Source: Vitrella brassicaformis CCMP3155 (lineage: Eukaryota; Protista; Chromerida). From it: a stretch of DNA of 64,000 nt. The notes below the pieces were generated by a model, which saw only the letters and a list, made by a program, of their open reading frames with translations, had not been told where the DNA came from and made no database searches. Location of the stretch: assembly GCA_001179505.1 (NCBI GenBank), contig CDMY01000738.1, positions 220,790-284,789 on the forward strand. Direction: 5' to 3'. This document shows positions 26,288-42,414 of this stretch, piece by piece; position 1 is the first letter of the stretch; every line of letters begins with the position of its first letter. The position numbers were made by a program, and so were the translations under genes.

Positions 26288-27556
26288 TTAGAGTTTGCTG
26301 AGTACGACGTCGACGAAGGAATCCTCGCCCTCGCCCACCCAGGCCACCTTGGCGCCAGGCTCGATGATCATCGCATAGCTGACACACACAGAACATTCAC
26401 CACAAACCAAAAGGAGGGAGGGAGAGGTGCCATGGGATGAGATGAGGTGCACCTTTGTGTGTGGATTTGGTGTGGGGTGTGTGTGGTGGGGAGGGGTAGT
26501 TACGTTAGTTACCGGTTGGATCGCGAGCCGAGGTAGTTAGCCGAGGCGTCCAGCACCATACCGATGGCCTGAACGGGGTTTGAAAGAAACAAGGACACAC
26601 ACACACGCACATCATTCAGATGTGGCGGGTGTATGGGGTGGGTGAGTAGGTCGTCCTTCTGCTGCACCGCAAGGCACCTACCTTGGTGAAGTCTCCGTTG
26701 CCGTCGCTGATCATCAGCACACTGTCGGGCACATTGACGTCCTTCTTCCAGGCTGATTGATCCAAGCACACAACCAACCATCCACAGCACGGTGAGACAG
26801 ACAACACACACAGGAAAAGTGGAAGTATACGCGCGCGCGTGTGGGATGGATGCGATGCTTGTGGGTGGGGTGAGACGACGCACCTACCCTTCATGACGAA
26901 CGGGTCATTAACGGCGATGCACGCGATGGTCTTCACGCCCTTGGCGGCCAACTCAGACGCCTTGCTCACGAAGCCTGACCAGGCCACATGCCACACACAC
27001 ATGCACACGCAGAAATATGTGTCTGTCTGTCTGCCTGTGCGGCTGGTGTGTGGCGCGTACCGGGCAGGTGCTTCTCGCTGCATGTGGGGGTGAAGGCACC
27101 TGCACACAGGCGCACAAGACACTTGCCATCCACCCACCGGTGCACCACAGTGCATGCCTTTGTGCCCTGTCTCTGCCTGTCTGTCCTTGTCTTTGGCTCA
27201 CCCACCCGGGACGGCGAAGAGCACCCCCTTGTCGGTGAAGACGTCCTTGATGCTCTTGACCTCATCCCCAACCTTCACCTTCACATCAGGCAGCTGCTCA
27301 CATCACACCGACCACACACCCACATGCACCACATGCAGCACATGCAGGTCGTTTAGCGCCTGGATCTCCCTGCTGCCGTGTCCTTCCATCCCCCTTTTCG
27401 TCGCACCGTTGCTCCGGCAGCGATTTTGGCCATCGTGGTCGTGGCGAAGTGTCGGGGCGGCTCACACAGAGAGTGGCGAAAGAGGGACGGCCGGAAGGCT
27501 GTGGTGGCAGATCTGAAGGCTGACGACAGTGGCAAGCGCGAAAGGGGCAAGATCAT
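26288..27556 (-). CDS. Type II / Prx5-family peroxiredoxin with an N-terminal mitochondrial-type presequence, multi-exon
   Basis: Motifs VLFAVPG|AFTPTCSEKHLPG|F, IACIAVNDPFVMK|AW, ISDGNGDFTK, LGSRSNR|YAMII, and TAA at 26288-26290. The leader MILPLSRLPLSSAFRSATTAFRPSLFRHSLCEPPRHFATTT precedes a second Met at 27433. Confidence 0.93.
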
Positions 27557-27813
27557 GCGCCGGATGGCGAGCGTGTCCGTCAAGCTGGACGGAGCGATGT
27601 GCTCTAACTCCATCCGCATTTCTCCCTTCCCTCCCTTTGCTCTCTGTCTTCACGTCTTAATGGCTCGTTGCCTGCTGTCCTAGCGAGTGACTGTGAGGCG
27701 GAGAGAGTGTGATTTGAGATCTTCTTGGTTCTTCGCCTGCTGCCGTTCGCTGTCTGTTGACTGACCGTCCTGTCGGCTTGTTCGTTTCGTTCGTCGTTTG
27801 CTGGCCGGCCATA

Positions 27814-28426
27814 ATGTTGCCCAACTTCCAGAACCTGATGCAAAACATCGACACGTCGATGAACATGGGGTGCGATGCGCCAGACAGACAGACAGACCCC
27901 TGAGGCTCCGGTATCTCTGTCTGGTCTGTCTGGTTTGTCTGGTCTGTCTGTCTGTGTGAAGGTTGATCAACAATCTGAGAACCAACAACCTCATCCTTGA
28001 CGTGTTGATCTGCGCCCTCATCCCCGTGGTCCTGCAGCTGCTGCACTCGATGGACCCCATGGCCACCATCAAGCGCTGGCTGGAGCGGTGGTTCAGGGAA
28101 ACCTGGGACCGCAAGACGACCTACGTTCGCACCATTGCGTGAGCGTCGCGGAGGCAGGGAGGGAGGGTGGGAGGGTGGGAGAGGGACGGGAGAAGGTTGG
28201 TTGGACGGCGTGCTGTGTGTGGGGCGTATGCAGGGTGACGTTCAACGAGAACAGCAGCGTCTACGCGAATTGCAGCAACACGGGCGGCAAGATGACCACC
28301 CACCACCAGCGCAACAAGGGCCTGCAGGAGGCCATCCAGCTGTACCTTCAGCAAAAGGGGCTCAAGCTCACCACGGCAGAGGTGGCCCTGTCCACGCGCA
28401 AAAACCCCGGTAGCCTTTGCACCACA

Positions 28427-28461
<35 letters not shown>

Positions 28462-31295
28462 GGAGAGCATGGAGCCCTCTGATTGCTGCGGCCTTGGGTC
28501 TGCAGATGACGAGTACGATTCCGAGGATGAAGGCGATGACTTCAAAGGTAAAGATCCATTCGGATTTGACCTCTTTGACCCTCCTGCAAACCACCCCAAA
28601 TTCTCCCCAGCAATGGACGACGACTGGCGCGTCAAGAAGAACCAGCAGCCGGACAAGCGAGAGTTCGACGTCATCCGGCTCCCGGCCGACGGCAGGTGGG
28701 TGACGGTGGACTCCGAGAAGCGCCTCGAGTTCCGACACATGACCAAGGAGAAGGACCAGGGGGACGGTGGGGGCGAGGAGGATGACGGCCGCGACCGGGG
28801 CGGCGGCCGGAGGGCCTCCAACAAGGAGATGACCTTCGTCTATGAGCTCATGTGGTGAGTGGAGTGCCAGCCCGGCGAGAGAAATGGTGCGTGTTAGTTT
28901 GTCGAGCTGTGTGTTGTGTTGGTGGTGTGGTTGGCGTGTCAGCACCAAGGAGGCTGGCGACAAGATCATTGACGAGTTCATCAATGAGGCGTATGACTGG
29001 TACGAGGCGCGCCGGCTCAAAGAGGCGCAGCGGGACAAGTCGCGTTACTTCTTCTCAGTCATCAAGTACCCCACCATCGACGAACGGGTAAGCCAAACAC
29101 ACACACCCCAAGCACGTCGTGATACGCAGACACACGTGTCCGCCCCCTTCTCTGCTTCTCCTCTCGGCTCGGCTGCTGCAGAAGAACAGCACTGCCGGGC
29201 TGCCCACTTTCAAGAAGTACCTTTTGTCTGAGGCTAAGACCTTCGACAGCCTTTTCTTCGCCGAGAAGGAGGTGCTCCTCAAGCTGATCGATGACTTCAA
29301 CAACAAGACGGGGAAATTCCGCATCAAGGGTTTCCCTGACAAGCTCGGGCTGCTGGTGAGTGAGACTAGACTCAACCAGCAACAGCACCCCCTCCAACCC
29401 CTCTCTGTGTGTGTGTGTCAGCTGGACGGCCCCCCAGGGACCGGCAAGACCAGCGTGATCAAGGCGCTTGCCCAGTACACCCACCGGCACGTGGTCACCA
29501 TCTCCCTGGAGAAGATCAAGACCAACCAGCAGCTGATGGACCTCTTCTTCGACCTGGTCTTCCCAGTGCAGAACGACTGGCGTGAAAACCGTTTCAAGTT
29601 CCATGAGGTCAGTCAGTGAGGGGGCGGAGTGATGTGGGGACGGCAGATCAGCTGTTCGGTCTGGCTTTGCTGTGTGTCCGTGTCTGTCGTGTCTGTCGTG
29701 TGTGTGTAGGTGATCTTTGTGATGGAGGACATCGACTGCGCCTCGGAGGTTGTGTACGCCCGGAAAGGCGCAAAGAAGTACAAAAACGCCAAAAAGAGTG
29801 AGCTGATGGGATGGGTCGTGCGTGGATGGAAGGTGCACAGACAGACAGACAGACAGACAGGTGATGCAGTTGGCTCTGTGTTCATGCGCAAGATGTGTTT
29901 GTGTGTACGCAGCCATGCCGGCCCTTCCCACCGTCCCCGACGACCCCCTGGACACCGTCACACAACCGCAAGCCCACCACGAGATGGTGCGTCTGCTCAC
30001 AACACACACACAGAACCACCCACTCCATGCCCACCGCAACCCCCCGCTCTCTCTCTCTCTCTGTGTGTGTGTGTGTTTCTCCAGCTGCGTCAGATCTCGC
30101 TCAACAGCAAGGTGCCTTCGTCGTCATCGTCACCCTCACCATCACGCTCCCCACCGCGCCAGCCACCCTCACCATCACGCGGCGCGGGGGCGCTCGTCAC
30201 CGACATTCGGCTGACGGGAATGGACGGCAACCACGGCAGCGACGATGAGCTCACGCCCTCTGTGCTGCCGCCAACGGAGAGCTCGAGCGACAACAAGACA
30301 GAGTGGGAAGCGGCCTCCAAAGAGAAGGTGGGTTGGAATCACAGACAGCAGGGAGGGGCACACAGAGACGACGCTCACGGACGGGGTGGTTCTTGTGCTG
30401 TGGATGATGTGGTGCAGGACCATACGAGTGTCATCCGTGAGGTCTCGCAGCCACCTATGCCCTCCCCCACTCTCCCACCAGCACCAGCACCCACACCCAC
30501 ACCACTGGCACCGGCGGCAGATGCAGCTGCAGTTGCAGATGCTCCTGCTGCAGACAGAGAGGAGAGTGACGATGAAGACCACTCCGCGGGCCCGACGAAT
30601 GAGGCGAAAGAGGCGGCTCTGATGGGCAAGCTCCTAGGGCAGCTGATTGGCATCGGCGGCAAGAGCGACCCCAAGAAGGAGGGCAAGGAGGGCCCCTCTG
30701 GCGAGGGGATGGGGCTGGGGGCGCTGATTGGCGGTGTGGGGGTGGGCGGCGGCTTCGCCGACCCACTGGCAGACAAACTCAATCTCGCTGGTGGGTGAGG
30801 TGACTCCATGCCTTCACGCCGAAGACAACGAACGTCAAGATGGCCCTCCCTCTTTGTGTGTGTCTGTTGAATGGATGGAATGTGATGGTCGGCGGATCTG
30901 CAGGTCTGTTGAATGTGATGGACGGGGTGATTGACTCTCCCGGGCGCATCGTGGTGCTGACCACCAACCACCCCGAGAAGCTCGATCCCGCCCTCATCCG
31001 GCCGGGACGCATCAACAAAAGACTCCACCTGGGATACATCAAGGTAGATCCCCCCACCCCACACACACTCACACACACGCCCACCTCTCTCTGTGTCGGT
31101 GTGTGTCTGTGGCCTCAGGGCCCCGAGCTTTGCAGGATGGTCGAGCACTACCTCGAGTGCAAGCTGAGCGACGACGAGCGCACAAGGGCTCACGAGGTGG
31201 CGCTGCGGCACCATCTGACCCCGGCGCAAGTTGAGCAGGGGTGCGCCGAGGTCGAGACGCCCGCACAGCTCATCACGCTGCTCAGCCACCTCTGA
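27814..31295 (+). CDS. BCS1-like AAA+ ATPase, multi-exon
   Basis: Walker A LDGPPGTGKTSVIKALA, Walker B VIFVMEDIDC, and GLLNVMDG...IVVLTTNHPEKLDPALIRPGRIN. There is an N-terminal hydrophobic anchor (LILDVLICALIPVVLQLL) and a long low-complexity insert between Walker B and the second region of homology. Confidence 0.9.
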
Positions 31296-32543
31296 TTTGA
31301 TTGATTCGTGTGATCCGATCGTTGGGAGGGAGAGGGAGGGGGAGGGGGAGGATGGGGGCACCCCATCCAGTCCCTCCAGCCACATGTGGGTTGTGTTGTT
31401 TGCTGTCAATGCATAGTTGAGTGAGTCGTTCGTTCGTTCGGTCGGTCGGTTGGGTGAGTGAGTGAGTGAACTCAGTGAGGCCTTCCTGTGATGCAATGCG
31501 TTTTGCTGATATGAGTGATGTGCTCTGTGTGTGTGCCTGCACGTCTCATGGAGAGAGAGGCCGATGGTGGATGGATGGATGGATGGATGTGGGTGTGCTG
31601 GTCGGGTGCCAGCTACCCATGGCCGGCAGGACACCTCACCCGTCCTTAGGATCCTCCCCCCCGGTGCATCTTCCTGCCTGCCTGCCTGCCTGCCTGCCTG
31701 CTGGTCCCTTCCTCTCTGTCTTGCTTCCTTCCTATGGTAGTGTGTGTGGTGGGATGACTGTGCTCATACGTAATCCTACATAGGTCGCTTGCACGTCAGC
31801 AGTCAGTCAGTCAGTCCGTGTCAGCGTGTCCCTCCCTCCCGCAATTGCCAGGAAGCCAGGTTATTATCCAATGTCTGACGTATGTGATGCCTACCTACTC
31901 CAATGGAATGGACCGAATGCAGCATCGCTAGCGAGCGACTGAGTGCGTCTGTGTGCCGCAAATTGGCGGCCATTTCGTGTGGTGGCTGGCGGTGTGGTGT
32001 GTCTGTCTGGCTGGTCGGTCGGTGGATGCGCGGCGCCATGGAGCACAAGGAGGCGATGCATCAGCAGCTAGCTGGTGGTGCATCGCCTCCTTGTTCTCCA
32101 TGTCGACGAACGTTGATCGGCCGAGCAGCAGCTGCGTGTGTGTGGAGACCCCTCCTTTCACTACTACTTAAATGTCAGGTGAGTTGTCTGTCTGGTCGAA
32201 CTTTTGCAGGCGTCGAACCATCAGTTTCTGCTGTGTCGCTTCCTTGAGCAACTGACCTGCCCGTTGACTGACCACGCTTTCATTCTGGTGCAATCAATCA
32301 ATTGTGTCACACAGAAAAGACAGACCGCACCGCACTGGCACGTCAGGTCACAACTATACACATGAAGACACACCTCTCTCTCCTCCTTGCAAGCTATACA
32401 CAGCTGGCTGGCCAGCACCAGAGAAAGCCATGAATAGCTAATAGATACTAACACCACCCTCCCCATGTCACTCACTCACTTATCGACCACATATAATGCC
32501 AATGGCCCACCCCATCTGTCTGTCCCTTCTTTCGTGTGTCTGT

Positions 32544-33098
32544 CTAGCGGTCCATCTGCAGCTGGCGGGCCCAGGCGGCCCTTCTCCTCGTGTACTTGCT
32601 GACATAATGCCGACACAGCTCGTCCACACGGCCGCTGTCCAAACCTTCGCCACGCATCAGCTCCCGCAACTCAGCCAGCCGATCCCTGCGCACAGGCCAG
32701 ACCACACACACAAGGTCGATGGATAACGTAAGTGTGTCGGGTTTAGGTGTGTGGCGTCACACACTTACATGAACACGTCTTGGTGTGTCTGGCAGACGGC
32801 CAGGGTGCGGTCACACCTGCTCATCCAGCCCGCCCACCGCCATGCATCCGGCACGCACGACGCCATCAGGGCGTCCGTCGACCTGCACCACATCAAGCAG
32901 TGAAAGCTCCATGCATTTCTCTATGTCTGTGTGTGTGAACGTGTTGGACAGCTAGCTGACTTGACGAGCTCGAACGGAAAGGCCAGCTGTTTCTTGCCGA
33001 CGTCCAGCAGGATCCGCCAACCACCGTCGGCAGCACACTCAACCTCAACCGACATCCCTACACACGCACACAGACACACACACACAACAATCATTCTC

Positions 33099-33129
<31 letters not shown>

Positions 33130-36100
33130 TNNNNNNNNNNNNNNNNNNNNNNNNNNNNNNNNNNNNNNNNNNNNNNNNNNNNNNNNNNNNNNNNNNNNNN
33201 NNNNNNNNNNNNNNNNNNNNNNNNNNNNNNNNNNNNNNNNNNNNNNNNNNNNNNNNNNNNNNNNNNNNNNNNNNNNNNNNNNNNNNNNNNNNNNNNNNNN
33301 NNNNNNNNNNNNNNNNNNNNNNNNNNNNNNNNNNNNNNNNNNNNNNNNNNNNNNNNNNNNNNNNNNNNNNNNNNNNNNNNNNNNNNNNNNNNNNNNNNNN
33401 NNNNNNNNNNNNNNNNNNNNNNNNNNNNNNCCCCCCCCCTCCCCCTCCCTCCCTCCCTCCCCCCTCCCTCTCCCCCTTCTCTCTGACCGTCTCCCTACCG
33501 AGGTAAGTGGCCCTGGGAGGGTCAGCTTCGTCGGTTGTGTCCTTAATGGTGAGCCATTGGGGGTAGATGTGCTTGAGCAGTGAGGGTGCTGACGGCATCC
33601 CCACCGCCAGAAGGTCGTCCATATACCGATACAGACGGCCGGGGAGCGGCAGGGCGGACACCGGGTCGTCTGCAGCGGCTGGTGATGATGGGGGGCTGCT
33701 GATCACCTGACGGAGGGCGGAAGGAAGCCGTGTGTGCGAAGCCGGAGGGAGGGAGAGGGAGGCCATCCTCCTTCGGGAAGTGAAGAAGGCCCTCTCGTAG
33801 CTGTAGAGGTAGAGGTCAGCCATCTGCGGTCCCGCATTGGTGCCCATTGGAATGCCCGCGTGCTGCCGCATGGTCGCGCCACCGCCCAGAAGGTCGATAA
33901 CCGTGTCGCCGACCACCGTCTCTATCAGCTCGTCCACATCACCTCGCGTCATTCGGATGGCCGAAGCACATAATGCCTTTGTCGCTGCTGGCGCTTCTGG
34001 CGCTTCTGGGACTTCTGTGGCGCTGTCTTGCGATACCCAGCGTGTCTGCCGCTCGTCACCTGATAGACACATGAGGGCGGACAGATGGGGTGAATGGATG
34101 TGGGAGGGAGGCCTTGGGTGTGGTTGTGTGTGTGCACCGTACGGTGGATTTCCAGCAGGTGGTTGGGTCGCCAGACCATCTCGAGCAACGACGAGAGGCG
34201 CCGCTTCTGCACACAACCACACACCACACACACACACACATACATACATACTTGAGAGGGAGAGCAATCCAATGCGCGTCTGCGGGTGTGGTATGTGTCG
34301 TTTGAAGCACCAGGTCGTCGTGTGGTATCGATGTGAAGAGGGCTTCAATGTCGAATGTGGACACCGACCGCTGCATCGTCCCACCTTGCGGCAACACCTA
34401 CACACACACACACACACACGTGTTGGATGCGTAGGGAGATCATTGCGCGGCGAACGGACCTACCTGGTTGAGTCGATGCAGGTCGGCCGCCACCTCGTCC
34501 ACCGACCTGACGACCGTCAGAGGGATGGCCGGGCCATGTTGGATAGCGTCATGCAGCATCAGATCCCGCTTCACGTGCTTCAACACGTCACTCAGCAGAG
34601 AGCTGGCCTGGCTACCACACCCACACACACACACATTCATCCATATGAACTCTCTCCTTTCTCTGTCTGTCTGTGTGTCTAGTGCGCACGCACCGGTGTG
34701 GTCCTTGTGGAGCGGTTGTTGGTGATGAGTCTGACGCCGTGTGGCTGTTTGTGCATTTTGGGGATCCAATACACCGTCGCCGGCCTCTCCATCGCAGGCT
34801 CAGACAGCACATTAGACGGGAAGTGCCTCGCTGTCACTCGGTGTGTCTTCTCCTGACAAACAACCACCCACACAACACACTCGTGAATGATCCGCCCGAG
34901 AAGGGCAATTTACCCCTCCCACCGCACCCGTAGCTCGTTTGCCTCCTCTTCATCCAGGTGTGTGAACGGCCCCCCCAGGCACTCGCGCAGCAGCACCGAC
35001 CGATAGAGGGACTGGCAGACGACCACGAAGTTGGCGGCCGCCTTGTCCGCCGGCGCGAAGGTGAGGAACTGCGATGCTTGAAGGAGGGATGAGTACTCCT
35101 CCTCTGCAAAGAGCCACTGGAGCACCTGCTGCCGCGAGATAGGGCGCGGCAGATCCAGCTCCTGCCAAGAGGTGTCTGCACGACAGACACACATCCACAT
35201 AAAATGCCGAATATATGGCTTGAGGGGTCCAGCCTTGCCTTTCTAGTTTACCAGGCCCCTCAGGCTGATGGAAAGGCTTCCCTGGGCGAAATGGCGTGCC
35301 CTTTGATAGCGCCTCACGCACCTGCTCCATCGCGAACACGGACATGTCTGCCGTCCACACGTGACGCTCATGATGCGGCTGTGGCTGTGCTCCTGCCGAG
35401 GGTGGTTCGCTGATGCAGCGGTGTGTGTGGGGGTCGACGGGCACCGTGAACTGACGAAGGAGAGAGTCGGGAGGGACGTCACCTACACACACACACACAA
35501 CACACACACACACACGTGTGTCATTGATCCGTTGCCTTCCCGCTAGGCCGTTCCTTGAACCTCACCGTGGCCATGCTCTCTCGCCAGCCACCTTACACAC
35601 GCACACTGACCGTCCGCATGACCTTGACCTCCTTCACGGCCCAGCCATTTCTCCTCGTTCGCCGCCCTCCTCTCCGCAAACACCTCAGCCGACTGTGCGG
35701 CCACCCGCCGGAAGTTGGCGACGAGCATGCCGAGCGACCAGGGCACCTCTGGGAGCGTCTTGCTGATGGTTGGGGCGGCAATGGTGGGGCTGGGTGTGTC
35801 CTCTGTGTGCAGGAACCGTGCCGCGCGGCTGGTGTTGGGTGTTCGGGCGCGCTGCGTGTTCTGGGCCGACCGCAGGCTGAGAAGCGCCTTGCGGAACCTG
35901 TCAGGTTCAAATGCACGAGAACAGCAGGCCGGGCCGTGTGCTCTGTCTGTTTGACTGACTGACTACATCATATCATACGCACAGGGCATACCTGAGCTCC
36001 TTCTGGATGACCTGCAGATGAGCCCGCTCAAGCCTCGCCTCCTCAGCCTTGGCCGTGAAGCAACAGATCCATCCATCCATCCATCAATTGCAGTGAAGTC

Positions 36101-36458
36101 AACAGATCTTTGCACACCATCGTCTCACCATCTTGTAGGCCTCTCCAGTGAAGAAGAGAGGCTGCACGATACTCATACCGCTGTGACCTCTCCGGCTGCT
36201 GTGCGGATGCGATAACAGCCGCGAGGTCGGCGAGATCGCAAACGAATTCGATACCACGCGGCTCACAACGGCACGACGCTTGTAAAGGCCAGCTCTCCTG
36301 GCAAGCATGCAGGCGAGAGCGATCTCACCAGAGCTGAGCTCGCAGATGCCTAGGGTGCTACCTGAAACCGCTCCTGCTGGGAAACATCGCTGCCGGGAAA
36401 CAGCAAAATAGGCGCTCAGCCTCCATCGGGGCTCTAGAAGGCCTGCCGGCTGCGGCAT
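32544..36458 (-). CDS. Penelope-like-element (PLE) type reverse transcriptase, endonuclease-less, 13 exons / 12 introns, intact (789 aa from ATG 36308, 839 aa from ATG 36458)
   Basis: Exons on the minus strand: 36458/36308-36129, 36047-35992, 35897-35611, 35482-35252, 35175-34928, 34852-34694, 34607-34464, 34397-34311, 34206-34143, 34059-33499, 33057-32961, 32882-32769, 32685-32544. All introns are GT-AG, all phases are compatible, and there are no internal stops. PLE motifs appear in order: HVWTADMS...ALSKGTPFRP, PADKAAANFVVVC, YWIPKMHKQP..VRLI, TFDIEALFTSIPHDDL, QHAGIPMGTNAGPQMADLYL..YE, YRYMDD, IYPQWLTI, TYLG, then a thumb region and TAG. Confidence 0.9.
33131..33430. other. Assembly gap (300 N); others at 22946-23245, 37984-38283, 49752-50051 and 60155-60454
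   Basis: Runs of exactly 300 N are scaffold placeholders. Four of the five abut poly-G or poly-C runs. Confidence 0.99.
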
Positions 36459-36570
36459 CTTGCATGAAATGGCAGCACTGTAGCGCCGTACACACGCCCC
36501 TCCCTCCCTCCCCCTCCCCCTGTTTGCTGCCGCCGGTTTTCCCCGCCCCGGCGGCTCTCCTGCTGCTGAT

Positions 36571-37452
36571 ATGGCGTCAATTTTCGTCCTCCTCGTGGTG
36601 TGCGCCCTCAGTGCCCTTCTGCCCCTCCCGCCGCTGTGTGTCAACGCTCAGGCCCCAGGGCTCGACGCCAGATGGAAAGGGAAGTACGAGGTGGTTGACG
36701 AGCACGGCAGGTGCGGCTCGCCGAGCGGGACGGAGGCTGAGTTCACTGGGAGGGGCTTCGCCATCAACACCTGTCTGAGCGCCTGTGAAGCCAACCCTGA
36801 TTGCGGCGGCATCTAGTAGGCAGCAGGGGGGGGAGAGAGGGAGGTGGTATGAGGACCGAAAACGTGGTGGTTTGTTCTGTCGTGTCGGCTTCAGTTTTCC
36901 TGACGTTGAAGCCGATGGCGGTGGGTCAATAACGAGACAAAGCCTCCGCGAATTGCACTGTCTGTCTGTCTGTCTGCCGTGTGTGCTGCCCTCTTTCGTT
37001 CGATCGGTGCAGGTCCCCTCATTCAGAGCGAGTGCGGTTTGTACATGGACGAGCAGCCGGTGGTCATCGGCGACGTCATCTGCAAAAGCTACGACAAAAA
37101 GACAGGCCACTTCACCTGGGTCAGCTTCGGCGACTGCCGAAAGGACAAGGGCGTGCCGCCGTTGTGTAAGCCTGCCTGCCTGTCTGCCCTTCCCTTCCCC
37201 CACACACAACAATGACGGCTTTCTCTTTGTTTGACCTTGTGTGTTGCAGCGTCTGTGGAGCTTGACCTTGCTTCGCTCAAGATCAATACTGAGCCGACGT
37301 GTCAGCATACGTGTCGGGGGAACCCCGAGTGTGTGGGGATAGAGTACGACCCGCACAACCCCGTTTCGCAGTGTGAGGTCATCACCGACGGGCCCATCAC
37401 ACGTGCCTTCCTCGCGAGATGCTACAAGAAGGTCGACTTTCCTCCTTCATGA
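36571..37452 (+). CDS. Secreted protein with two tandem PAN/Apple-like domains (4 exons including a 26-nt micro-exon)
   Basis: Signal peptide MASIFVLLVVCALSALLPLPPLCVNA. Domain 1: GRCGSP...TCLSACEANPDCGGIY|FPDVEADG|GPLIQSECGLY...ICKSY. Domain 2: GDCRKD...TCQHTCRGNPECVGIEY...QCEV...RCYKK. The C-x3-C-x5-C-x-G-x2-Y spacing is typical of Apple domains. Confidence 0.78.
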
Positions 37453-38794
37453 CCCATTCATTGGTGTGGTGTGGTGGGGTGTGTTGGGGTGGGGGATGTG
37501 GGCATTTGTTTGCCACGAATGCGGCCAGGCTTTTGGTGAATCAAGACGTGATCCACGTGATCCATTAACAAACACAGCACTGACTGCACTGTGATTCATG
37601 TTGGTTGGAGAAAGAGAGAGTGGATGGATGGATGGATGGGTGGGCGGATGGATGGATGGTGTGCTCCCAAATGTCTATCTATTTCATGCCCGTCTGTCTA
37701 CAGGCTCTGGTGTGCGTGTCATGAAGGGACGGACGAGTGAAGGCGAGTAGGTTGGCATGGCTTGGCTGGCGTGATTGTGAAAAAAAGGTGTGAACATTCG
37801 TGTGGCAGGTTAGGTGTGACACAAGAGAGAGGCTGTTTTTTCTGCGACAGGTTGGTAGATAGATGCCGTCTCAAGCAGGGCGCGCTTGCGTTGCGTACAC
37901 ACGTGCGTAGGCGTATCTGCTGCGTCTTGTTTCACACCGGTTCCTCCATCTGGCTGCTTGTGCGTGTCCCCCCCCCCCCCCCCNNNNNNNNNNNNNNNNN
38001 NNNNNNNNNNNNNNNNNNNNNNNNNNNNNNNNNNNNNNNNNNNNNNNNNNNNNNNNNNNNNNNNNNNNNNNNNNNNNNNNNNNNNNNNNNNNNNNNNNNN
38101 NNNNNNNNNNNNNNNNNNNNNNNNNNNNNNNNNNNNNNNNNNNNNNNNNNNNNNNNNNNNNNNNNNNNNNNNNNNNNNNNNNNNNNNNNNNNNNNNNNNN
38201 NNNNNNNNNNNNNNNNNNNNNNNNNNNNNNNNNNNNNNNNNNNNNNNNNNNNNNNNNNNNNNNNNNNNNNNNNNNNNNNNNNNCCCCCCCCTCTCCCCTC
38301 CTGACCCCTATGGCTTCACGTAAGCTTTAGTACATCTACCGTAACTGTGAGAAAGAGTGTGCGGACCATATGCTGTGATGTCACCCTCAATGAGCTGTTG
38401 ATACGATTCGCACAGGCGTCCAACAGTTCTCCACTCCTGCATCACATTTCGGCCAACCGTCGGAGATACCCGAGTGCTGCGTCATGAGAGTCGCTGCACT
38501 TGGGGTAGGTACAGCGACCATGGGCGGCGGCGCACTCAGGGAAGCCACGACGCTCGGCCAAAATTGAGAAGCATCCATCCATCCATCCAGTGGGCAAAGA
38601 GAGAGAGAGGGCGGGGGGAGACACCAATCACACACACACCACCACACCACCACTCATACAAGATGGCCGGCCACGTGTGGTCGCCTCGCGCACACGGGCA
38701 TTGGCACAGGCACCAGAGGGCATCTCATCTGCCTAGACAAAATCACACACAAATATAGAGTGAGTTATCGACATAACACACCACCGACAGTCAG

Positions 38795-41700
38795 TCAGGC
38801 CCCCCCGCCCCATCTCACGACGAAAATCATGCTCCCCCTGTCGTCTTCCTCTCTCCTGCTGCTACTGCTACTACTACTGCTGCTTCTGACCGGCCCGCCG
38901 CTGCTGTAGTACACGAGCTTGCCGTCCGTCGCACTCATCAGCGGCGGCACGTATGAGCCCATCTCCAGTGCAATCCGATACAGCGGTTTCTGACGCACGG
39001 TCGTCCCCACATACCCATACCCATAACCCCCTTTCCTCCCTCTCTGCCTCGCTCCCGTCGTCTGCTTCTGCTTCTCCTTCTCCGGAGGACACACCGAGGC
39101 GAGCAGATCCTCCTTCTCACTCCCCCGTCCATCACTGCCCGGCCAGATCTCTGCCGTGAGCACCGACCCCTGCCGCGCCAAAATGACGAGCACTCCGTGC
39201 AGAGGGTTGCCGAGACAGTCCTCAAGGAAGGTGCGCGACGGATCTGCCGACCGCAGGATGATGCGCCCCGCGCTGTCGATGGTTGTGACCAGTGGGGAGG
39301 GGAGGGAGGGGGAGGGGCGGGAGGGTGGTGATGGCTGGGAGAGGGGAGGGGGTGGGGGTCGGGGTGGGGGAGAAGGGGTGGTGGTGGTGGTTATGGTGGT
39401 GGTGGTGGTGGCGCGGGTGTGTGTGGGGAGGTGCTCGTCAAGGTCGATGTACTGCAATCGAACGGGAAGCAAGCCGCTGTCATTCACGACACAACCTGAC
39501 ACAAACATAGGCAGAGAGAGAGAGAGAGAGATGATTCTCCCATACCTTCCACCACCCCTCTTTATGCCTCTCCTCTGTCTGCCTACCGGTGATGCATTTG
39601 GTCGGGAGGGTGTTCCGCACCCACGTGGGCATGCTGCCAGTGGCCGCCATGCGGTGCAGCTCAGCACGGCACTTGGACGCGGTGCACGCGAAGAATGACG
39701 GCAGGTAGTGCCCGCGGAGAGGCGCATAACCGGACAGCCAGCACGACTGCACCACACACACACACACATGGCGAATGCCATCCATCCATCCATCCATCCA
39801 TTGTGCTTTCTTGCCTTTAGTCTGAGCACTGGTGAGGGGACTTTGTCCCGCTCTTGGCACGAGAACACCAGGACCTCCTCGTACTTGGGCAGCGCCACCA
39901 GCAGGAAAGGCTTGTAGGCGTGGAAGCCCATCGACACGCCCCGGAAGCCGAGCGCAGTCGGGATGGCGTGACGATTCGCGAACGTCAGAGGGCCCAGCAA
40001 ACGGCCTGCACACACGTGAAGACGTGAACACGCGAAGGCGGCGTCGGCCGATGCTTCCTTCTGCCTGGCGCACCATGTGTGTCGAACACTCTAAGAGTCC
40101 CATCTTCGCAGCATGAGGCCATCAGGCCGTCTCGCGCTTCACCGAGCTGGTTGCCGGGGTGGATCTCCACCTTCTTGACAGTAATGCTCTCGTTCACGTT
40201 TATAGAGCGACCAACGCCACCGCCGATTGCGCCCGTTGGATCCGCAGACGCCGACGCAGAGGAGGAAAAAATACCCCTCGGGCTATGATTGACGACACAC
40301 ACCCACGGCCCCACATATTGCGACGAGTGCTGTGCTCCATCCATCCATCCATCCATGCATCCATCCATCCATCGTGGTCACTCACTCGGTGTAGCTGCAG
40401 TAGTTGGCGTAGAAGGCGAGCCACTCGGCGGCACTTGTTGCCGGGAGGGCGTTGCGCGGGACGATGGGAGGGGGACGGTCGTGTGTGACGTGCCGCACGA
40501 AGGCCCACTCCTGCAGAGAGGCCGAGTCGAGCGGCAGGTGGGTGGGCACGCGAAACACCAGCACCACCTGACACATGGATGGATGGATGGATGGGGAGAT
40601 CGACTGTGTGTTGGTGTCTTCTTACCGTGGCGATGGCAGCGATGAGCAGCCGGCCGTCGTAAGACATGTCCTCCACCTGAACGCGCCAGAGAAAGACACA
40701 CACATGGACCCACAATGATACATCTGTGTGGCGTCTCGGTGTGTCTTCGTTTCGTTTGTGTACGGACTTCTTCCTCTGCGAGATGGTCCAGCACCGGCGG
40801 CAGTGGGTGCACCAGCTGCCGCCAACTCCTGTCCCCACTGCCGCCCGAGTAAGCCTGCAGGCAACACAACACAACACACCACACCACGACACACACACAC
40901 AAGAAAGAATTCGGTCTCCACTTGCTTCTCTTCGTTGCTGCACCCGCGCCCACCCACCCCGCGGACCCTTTGGTAAACGTTGTTTGTGACCCAGAGGCCC
41001 GCTAGACACGCAGAGGGGCGCATCAATGAGGAGGGGCAGGGGTGGGAGACGTCGGCACTTGACGAGCTGCTGCTGCTGCTGGTAGCGGAAGCCGGCGGCG
41101 GCGCAGAGATGGAGGGGCTGCTCACGCTCCGCTGAAGACACACAAATGCACATAAACACAGAGATACCGACGCATGAGCATTGAGAAGAGAGTTTCTGTA
41201 TCGTCCCACCTGCTGGTGCTGGCGCTGGTGTGGCCTGGGTGGGCGCCCCGGTCTCCTGCCCGGCTGTGGCTCGTTCATGGCCCACACAGAGATCTTGCAC
41301 CCCTGATGGCCGAGAGCGACGTACTGGCCGTCGAGGGCAGACACCGATGTGACGTGGTTGTGCTGCAAACCGGCCCGGAGGAAGCCATGTTGCAGGGAGT
41401 ACCCTGTGCACACACAACAGACAGAGAGAGGCGGTAGATGGGTGGCACCATCGGCCGCCCCCAACACACACACACACACACACACACCTGTGTGTGAGAA
41501 CCGCCCCTGCCTGCACGCCTCGCGCATCTGATTGGTCGACAGACAGGCAGACAGACAGACAGACACACACACATAGAGATAGAAGATACTCATGCAGTCT
41601 CTCTGTCTCTCCCCGTCTCTCTGTCTGGGCACCTCACTGTCTGTGTGTACCTGTGCAGCTCTTCTCAGCAGCGCCCGACAGTCCACATGGCGGTCGTCAT

Positions 41701-42414
41701 CAGACTCATGATCTGTCTGAGCCGGGCCGTCATAATCATAATGCAGGTGGGCGATGGTCAGCCAGAAGTTGGCGTTGTCGAAGATGTTTAGACACCAATC
41801 CTGCAAAGCAGAACATGACAAACACACAGAGATGGGATGATGGGATAGGTCTGATAGGTGCAGCCCATCTTTGTATGTGTTGACCTTGCAGACGAGCTGC
41901 AGCCTGAGCAGCTGCGGCGGCCTGAGGTAGCTGAGCATGCCCACCATCATTTCACGCGGCAGAGGAAGCTCTGAACGCACCCACACAGAGGGAGGTAGGG
42001 AGGTGACAACAGACCGCTCTTGTTTGTGTGCTCACGGTCCTTGACTTGCTGCAGTCCGCCCGGCCCGTTGCCGTCATTGTCATTGTCATGGTCACCCTCT
42101 TCCGCCCTCTCCTCCTCTCCCCTCCTGCGATACCTCTCACGCCACCTCTCGTCAGCACCACCATAACCAATGCCACCAGCACCAGTTATTGGTGGTTGCA
42201 CTCCTGTCATCTCCGTATCCATCTCTGTTAATACTTCAGCGCCTTCTCTGCATTCATCGGGCCCGTCGCTGCCGCCCTCGCCCTCTCGCGTCCCTCTCCG
42301 TGTCGTCGACGCGCGTCGCACTGTCGACGAAGGAAGACAGTTACGAAGAGCGGCAAGAAAGGAGCTGCCGCTCGATGGAGCTGCTGAGTCGAAGCTGCCG
42401 TACGGCGACGCCAT
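38795..42414 (-). CDS. F-box protein with WD40-like repeats, multi-exon
   Basis: F-box LPLPREMMVGMLSYLRPPQLLRLQLVCK|DWCLNIFDNANFW. WD-like ends include VALGHQGCKISVWAM, MASCCEDGTLRVFD and VTTIDSAGRIILR. The first exon from ATG 42414 joins in phase and the stop is at 38795. Confidence 0.72.

Follow-up and report, generated by a model that had tools for sequence, protein, structure and literature searches.

Of all mobile elements, the Penelope-like elements (PLEs) stand closest to telomerase, and the host reverse transcriptase (RT) genes named in reviews are telomerase (TERT) and the RVT genes. Among PLEs, the Naiad/Chlamys clade has a permuted architecture in which the GIY-YIG endonuclease (EN) is N-terminal (Craig et al. 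2021, PMC8557442), and the N-terminal extension of the related PLE-X elements contains a CxCX1–8C motif (PMC8557442). The DNA considered here is 64 kb long and ends a scaffold of 284,789 bp from Vitrella brassicaformis CCMP3155 (C738:220790–284789; hereafter the window, the whole stretch analysed). Its minus strand carries, at positions 36458–32544, an RT gene of 13 exons and 12 introns. On balance this gene is best explained, with moderate confidence, as a PLE RT of Naiad/Chlamys type that the host has domesticated.

Gene structure and expression

The host assembly comprises 72.7 Mb in 1064 contigs, and the protein annotated at the locus (CEM31947.1/A0A0G4GNT7) is an uncharacterised product of 745 amino acids (aa). 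In a three-frame translation the RT motifs are scattered across many short open segments. An exon chain was first built from the sequence, with GT–AG ends and consistent phases, and was then corrected with spliced contigs; contigs of four public runs (X1, X2, X5 and X7) were aligned to positions 32400–36600. All 12 introns have GT..AG ends; 11 of them measure 66–104 nt, and intron 10 spans 441 nt in the assembly, 300 N included. The spliced coding sequence of 2565 nt encodes 854 aa in a continuous frame with one terminal stop.

The RT gene is transcribed and spliced. Contigs of runs X5 and X1, which come from different studies, are free of introns, which are retained in colinear contigs of the DNA runs X2 and X7. 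Records 12 and 13 of X5 and records 1 and 3 of X1 jointly span exons 1–13, and a 2716-nt transcript contig from JGI (L020, encoding database protein P0001) matches exons 5–13 at 100% identity. An earlier reading of the locus, made from the sequence only, had proposed 13 exons separated by 12 GT–AG introns; the spliced contigs of the two studies and L020 bear this out, all 12 introns being removed in RNA. The protein length given in that sequence-only reading, 789–839 aa, is corrected to 854, 804 or 760 aa, according to whether translation begins at ATG 36458, 36308 or 36176. The annotated model begins at the third of these in-frame ATGs (36176). Upstream, RNA coverage ends at 36315, 7 nt before ATG 36308. 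A search for contigs encoding the annotated 745-aa protein gave none.

Exon 1 (36129..36458, minus strand, as are all exons) holds the three candidate starts and is covered by X5 record 13 over 36128–36315. Exon 2 (35992..36047; 56 nt) has GT–AG ends and fits the length of the unaligned stretch in the same record. For exon 3 (35566..35897), the annotated model takes the donor at 35611; X5 record 12 runs unbroken over 35562–35707, so that RNA supports a donor at 35566 and adds 15 codons. The first splice model was dropped: it had ended exon 3 at 35611 and exon 8 at 34248, whereas the RNA contigs place these donors at 35566 and 34311. The 15 RNA-only codons (35567–35611, minus strand) add the sequence C-x-C-x8-H-x-H to the N-terminal extension, where it may form a small metal-binding motif. 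Exon 7 (34464..34607) is preceded by tandem acceptors 4 nt apart at 34608–34611 (TAG/CCAG/, with slashes at the cuts). The in-frame acceptor, 34607, is used in an X5 (Logan RNA) contig; L020 uses the upstream acceptor, 34611, which adds 4 nt and leads to a frameshift and an early stop.

Intron 10 (33058..33498) contains the assembly gap, an N run at 33131–33430 bordered on both flanks by long homopolymeric C tracts. Because 33499 is followed immediately by 33057 in the mRNA, both by contig arithmetic and in the alignment of L020, the gap is purely intronic and hides no exon. No DNA contig among those aligned from the runs bridges it.

Protein family and fold

The encoded protein is identified from its homologues and motifs as a PLE-type RT. 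Exon-by-exon Pfam searches gave a weak RVT_1 match for exon 8 (E 0.023), a PDB sequence search returned chance matches only, and when the largest exon was compared exhaustively with 1.84 billion representatives by HMMER, the protein itself was returned together with weak matches to the region between motifs B′ and C. A word-indexed search with residues 200–745 of the annotated protein (546 aa) retrieved 69 proteins at E values down to 5e-45. These homologues are ~26% identical over ~89% of the 546-aa RT region and contain the domains RVT_1, HTH_animal and GIY-YIG. In every homologue that carries GIY-YIG, this domain lies N-terminal to the RT, and because such an architecture matches that described by Craig et al. 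2021, the relatives are placed in the Naiad/Chlamys clade. In BLASTP comparisons, the Vitrella protein is colinear across ~600 residues with the Pygsuia protein P0219 (8e-38) and with P0120 (5e-41). Its own putative assignment to the Naiad/Chlamys clade rests on these best matches and on diagnostic motifs. The sequence-only reading had brought up the endonuclease-deficient elements Athena and Coprina; these are not its relatives, as those retrieved all belong to the clade with an N-terminal EN.

The motifs PK.HK, FDIEALFTSIPH, Q..GIPMGTN, YMDD and TYLG occur in order and align with those of PLE homologues, as the sequence-only reading had claimed. Asp516, Asp697/698 and family-invariant residues are retained. 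Exon 4 (35252..35482) encodes the region around the CxC motif that elements of the clade carry between EN and RT. This position here reads H-R-C (THRCIS; 35409–35426), the second Cys being kept and the first replaced. The 'QCAC' within the 15-aa RNA-only segment was considered as the clade CxC and dropped, since the homologous position lies ~35 aa downstream at THRCIS. The same exon encodes the GxKF/Y block that follows the CxC position (35286–35363), in which HVWTADM...KGTPFR aligns with H..TGDL...KGPKYR. Exon 5 (34928..35175) carries PADKA (35015–35059), which aligns with PADKA of the homologues and is the DKA form of the DKG motif; Naiad elements have DKA at this point and Chlamys elements DK-x. 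In exon 6 (34694..34852), the RT1/2 motif YWIPKMHK...GVRLITNN (34715–34774) includes the IPKMHK common to the Vitrella RT and its Naiad/Chlamys relatives.

The catalytic region follows from exon 8 (34311..34397), which encodes RT3(A), FDIEALFTSIPH, with the catalytic Asp516 and is the source of the RVT_1 match. An insertion resembling the insertion in the fingers domain (IFD) begins in exon 9 (34143..34206) between motifs A and B′, and its remainder lies in exon 10 (33499..34059). The spacing from the motif A Asp to the motif B′ Gln is 100 aa, compared with ~93 in the Naiad-type consensus, and the insertion aligns with those of Pygsuia and P0120. Exon 10 further encodes RT4(B′) GIPMGTN (33794–33868), a lineage-specific low-complexity insert and RT5(C) YMDD (33599–33634); RT7(E) TYLG straddles the exon 10/11 junction. 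The end of the palm and the start of the thumb are encoded by exon 11 (32961..33057), and the thumb by exon 12 (32769..32882), which is covered by X1 record 1 and L020. The coding part of exon 13 (32544..32685) encodes a C-terminal helix that ends colinearly with the C-termini of homologues, followed by the stop codon at 32544–32546.

In a tree of 37 sequences, comprising homologues without labelled Penelope, Neptune, Nematis, Athena, Coprina or TERT references, the Vitrella RT has a terminal branch of 4.9 substitutions per site. Its neighbours are two protist/environmental sequences, one of whose clusters holds a 1031-aa Pygsuia biforma protein with N-terminal GIY-YIG. An AlphaFold model built from a 53-sequence alignment has a predicted local distance difference test score (pLDDT) of 72 and a predicted template modelling score (pTM) of 0.76. 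The best Foldseek matches of this model in the PDB are telomerase catalytic subunits (E 3e-9 to 1e-6), followed by DRT2, group II intron RTs and retrons. An RT from the PLE/TERT lineage would be expected to give such a telomerase-like best match.

Endonuclease and N-terminal region

By the searches described here, the Vitrella RT has no endonuclease at either end. A hidden Markov model (HMM) of the EN and linker was built from this region in 13 homologues. It gave no score on the N-terminal 262 aa of the Vitrella protein, whereas shuffled forms of these residues do receive scores; it finds an equally distant Pygsuia protein at 3e-13. A degenerate GIY-YIG domain across intron 1, around FFTGEA...RLERAH, was rejected on the same grounds. 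There is no C-terminal EN either; the protein ends at the thumb, at the same point as its homologues. The absence of a GIY-YIG domain, noted in the sequence-only reading, thus holds at the N-terminus by the EN/linker HMM and at the C-terminus by the end of the protein at the thumb, and Pfam finds no such domain. That reading had also argued from the stop directly after the thumb. The protein does end there, but the argument looks away from the site of the EN, since that of the relatives is N-terminal.

The N-terminal ~255 aa are novel and without a recognisable fold. In the ESM Atlas, the model of the N-terminus reaches a template modelling (TM) score of at most 0.31 with any structural neighbour, and a feature search gave low-overlap DUF8422 leads only. 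Residues 51–94 of the 854-aa model (36174–36308) contain nine Arg/Lys and ten Ser/Thr residues and no acidic residue in 44 aa. Were translation to begin at ATG 36308, this Arg/Ser-rich, acid-free N-terminus would resemble a mitochondrial (organellar) presequence.

Copy number and genomic setting

The RT gene is strictly single copy and has no mobile-element hallmarks. Protein, profile and DNA searches find no other RT locus of its kind in the genome, and the DNA matches elsewhere are microsatellites of 30–50 nt that lie inside its introns. With a single locus and microsatellite-only matches elsewhere, the genome contains neither a retrocopy nor dispersed fragments of the gene, and the introns do not form an introner family, so that an introner origin for them is unsupported. 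Neither direct or inverted terminal repeats nor pseudo-long terminal repeats (pLTRs) were found at the locus beyond microsatellites. An Rfam scan of 27000–42000 (E ≤ 1) detected no hammerhead ribozyme (HHR) or other notable family; the absence of an HHR is uninformative by itself. The RT gene lies ~27 kb from the scaffold end, which bears no telomeric sequence, and (TTTAGGG)2, the assumed repeat unit of Vitrella telomeres, is absent from the window.

On the plus strand, a predicted, divergent open reading frame (ORF) occupies 36571–36813, its ATG 112 bp from ATG 36458. Several points of the sequence-only reading are sustained by these results: the divergent start 112 bp away (as a predicted ORF at ATG 36571), the lack of pLTRs and terminal repeats, and the non-telomeric setting; the many dispersed near-identical copies that it named as refuting evidence were not found. 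The divergent ORF has no Pfam match, and its product would have a signal-peptide-like hydrophobic start followed by a Cys-containing segment.

Downstream of the coding sequence, the 3′ untranslated region (3′UTR) extends over at least 1159 nt (31385..32543, minus strand) and is contiguous with exon 13 in L020, in which nucleotides 1403–2703 correspond to 32685–31385. It contains a near-perfect palindrome of 120 nt (inverted repeat I1; 32010..32129, minus strand), unique in the genome, that folds into a stable hairpin (−67.2 kcal/mol, z = −6.4, with 0 of 200 shuffles as stable). This hairpin could be a regulatory or an RT-recognition element. On both strands it gives weak, miRNA-precursor-like Rfam matches.

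Codon composition and other reverse transcriptases

The GC content of the RT gene at codon positions 1, 2 and 3 is 0.65, 0.50 and 0.74 (third-position GC content, GC3, 0.737), and that of its introns is 0.547. The host baseline, taken from exons of TERT, DNA polymerase B and HSP70 and leaving out the mis-framed HSP70 row for C708, spans GC3 values of 0.77–0.89. This closeness to host coding composition speaks for a gene that has long been resident and translated.

Vitrella also has a genuine TERT gene at C455:20705–20965 (L019), with a Telomerase_RBD match of 54.8 bits and an exon GC3 of 0.79. As the organism thus possesses its own TERT, the RT gene described here does not replace telomerase.

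A second RT family in the genome consists of intronless ORFs of 723–745 aa with CPC, DKS, QGSQLSPGLAN and WMDD motifs and a GC3 of 0.484. Its loci (L016, L018 and L101–L106) lie at C654:14581–16749, C1049:1149–3317, C766:20716–22848, C33:94947–96901 and C249:92861–95007, and on C198 and C368. The C654 and C1049 copies are 95–100% identical, those on C766, C33, C249, C198 and C368 are ~60% identical, and some contain stop codons. This has the look of a mobile or decaying retroelement family, and it serves as an internal control for how a mobile RT appears in the Vitrella genome. BLASTP found no significant similarity between the WMDD family and the PLE-type RT. The statement that the genome has no other PLE-like RT was narrowed accordingly, the weak profile matches having led to this unrelated family.

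Proposed origin and alternative explanations

It is proposed that a Naiad/Chlamys-type PLE RT lost its GIY-YIG endonuclease and all structural hallmarks of a mobile element, and that it settled as a single-copy, 13-exon, transcribed and spliced nuclear gene. From its conserved motifs, the Vitrella RT is probably still a polymerase, and it may remain an active RNA-dependent DNA polymerase. Because it is an RT without a nuclease, its action would be limited to pre-existing 3′-OH ends, which might be those of chromosomes or organellar DNA, of breaks, or of an RNA or protein primer. There it would use a bound RNA as template, in the manner of telomerase and of PLEs that lack an endonuclease. It is hypothesised that the gene represents an undescribed RT-based system, as the sequence-only reading suggested; no account of a domesticated PLE RT, or of any PLE in Vitrella, was found in the literature.

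The same reading had already proposed a domesticated host gene. Its single copy, 12 spliced introns and near-host GC3 support this, but a set of observations weighs against it. Searches of ~15 billion proteins and of JGI/ENA metagenome contigs, which did not take in the genomes of Chromera, colpodellids or dinoflagellates, returned no orthologue; the best relatives, 20–29% identical, are uninterrupted ORFs resembling transposable elements at 80 of 80 metagenome loci. As there is no orthologue, no ratio of nonsynonymous to synonymous substitution rates (dN/dS) is computable, and purifying selection acting on a host gene is unproven. The RT sits on a very long terminal branch, of 4.9 substitutions per site. 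Of the 120 columns with at least 90% conservation in the homologues, only 58 are kept (48%; homologues keep 62–96%), so that ~52% of family-conserved residues are lost, with the losses concentrated in the thumb. There is the low-complexity insert between motifs B′ and C, Pfam has no match to the whole annotated protein, and the frame-shifting acceptor is used in one transcript contig. Finally, PLEs keep introns during retrotransposition (PMC8557442), and introns alone therefore do not exclude a mobile past.

In the main rival explanation the locus is a relic: an old PLE copy without an EN became trapped and immobile, is still transcribed and open by luck or under weak constraint, and is on its way to becoming a pseudogene, with no function for the host. 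The missing orthologue, the extreme branch length, the eroded thumb, the low-complexity insert, the frameshifted splice isoform and the lack of Pfam recognition would all suit such a copy. Its survival would nevertheless be unlikely, given a 2.56-kb frame maintained over 13 exons, 12 working splice sites and intact catalytic residues. Time would also have been needed to gain 12 introns and to reach a GC3 of 0.74 against 0.55 in the introns, and decayed, stop-bearing copies are what typify the WMDD family in the same genome. A relic is considered an unlikely explanation of the locus.

Further from the evidence is co-option of the RT fold for a non-polymerase role, such as an RNA-binding or scaffolding function like that of Prp8, with the catalytic motifs kept but unused. 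Divergence of the thumb and of many conserved fingers residues would accord with such a role, as would the novel N-terminal ~255 aa with no recognisable fold. Catalytic residues are usually lost in non-catalytic RT derivatives, however, and here the motif A Asp, YMDD, the B′ Q..GIPMG and PK.HK are all intact, which makes this reading improbable.

A more specific variant of domestication is a second, independent 'telomerase-like' recruitment of a PLE-lineage RT, in which a dedicated RNA would template DNA onto free 3′ ends. The mitochondrial DNA of chromerids is fragmented and linear; if translation starts at ATG 36308, the enzyme might be targeted to mitochondria to service the ends of these molecules. 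This proposal is speculative and its probability is low.

Least probable of all is a still-autonomous, unusual EN-minus PLE that happens to exist in one copy and moves together with its introns: PLEs do retain introns after retrotransposition and EN-minus PLE-X, with an intron-separated N-terminal extension, arose inside Chlamys (PMC8557442), and the long, structured 3′UTR could act as a recognition element, but the gene is single copy with no fragments anywhere in the genome, has no pLTR, tail, HHR or telomeric repeats, stands head to head with another ORF 112 bp away, has a GC3 near host level, and contains 12 introns within its ORF, far beyond reported PLE cases.

Comparison with known systems

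The Vitrella gene shares much with the elements of the Naiad/Chlamys clade. Its RT is colinear with theirs over ~500–600 aa at 26% identity (E to 5e-45), and it has the DKA form, IPKMHK, the H..T.D/G..F block and an A-to-B′ insertion of IFD length. The thumb ends at the same point, and an HHR is likewise absent. Unlike Naiad/Chlamys elements, the Vitrella RT gene is single copy with 12 introns within its ORF, lacks pLTRs, tandem insertions and a microsatellite-target signature, and combines HxC in place of CxC with a near-host GC3 and a very long branch. With the EN-minus PLE-X elements of Selaginella and Chara it shares the absence of an EN and a unique, intron-split N-terminal extension. No report of the Naiad/Chlamys clade in alveolates was found in the literature; if the present assignment is correct, the clade extends to alveolates.

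Like Athena and Coprina, which were compared by description and without direct alignment to reference sequences, the Vitrella gene encodes a PLE-type RT without an endonuclease that would extend pre-existing 3′-OH ends. It differs from them in that it is not telomeric, has no reverse-complement telomeric repeats and no adjacent HHR, and is not multi-copy.

Like TERT, the Vitrella gene is an intron-bearing gene of the host genome, present once, that encodes an RT from the PLE/TERT lineage; both enzymes have an insertion in the fingers domain, and TERT is the best structural match (Foldseek E 3e-9). In contrast to TERT, the Vitrella RT has no Telomerase_RBD/TEN region by Pfam, and its sequence homologues are PLEs rather than TERTs. 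The RVT genes of fungi, protists and bacteria offer another parallel, as single-copy cellular RTs with very long branches and inserted loops. They nevertheless belong to a different RT lineage that is not PLE-like and carries, between motifs 2 and 3, the loop named 2a; no similarity of the Vitrella RT to RVT genes was retrieved in the searches. If the proposed origin is correct, the Vitrella gene would stand beside these host RTs as a natural example of a PLE-like RT turning into a cellular gene, in an organism that is related to the apicomplexan parasites but free-living.

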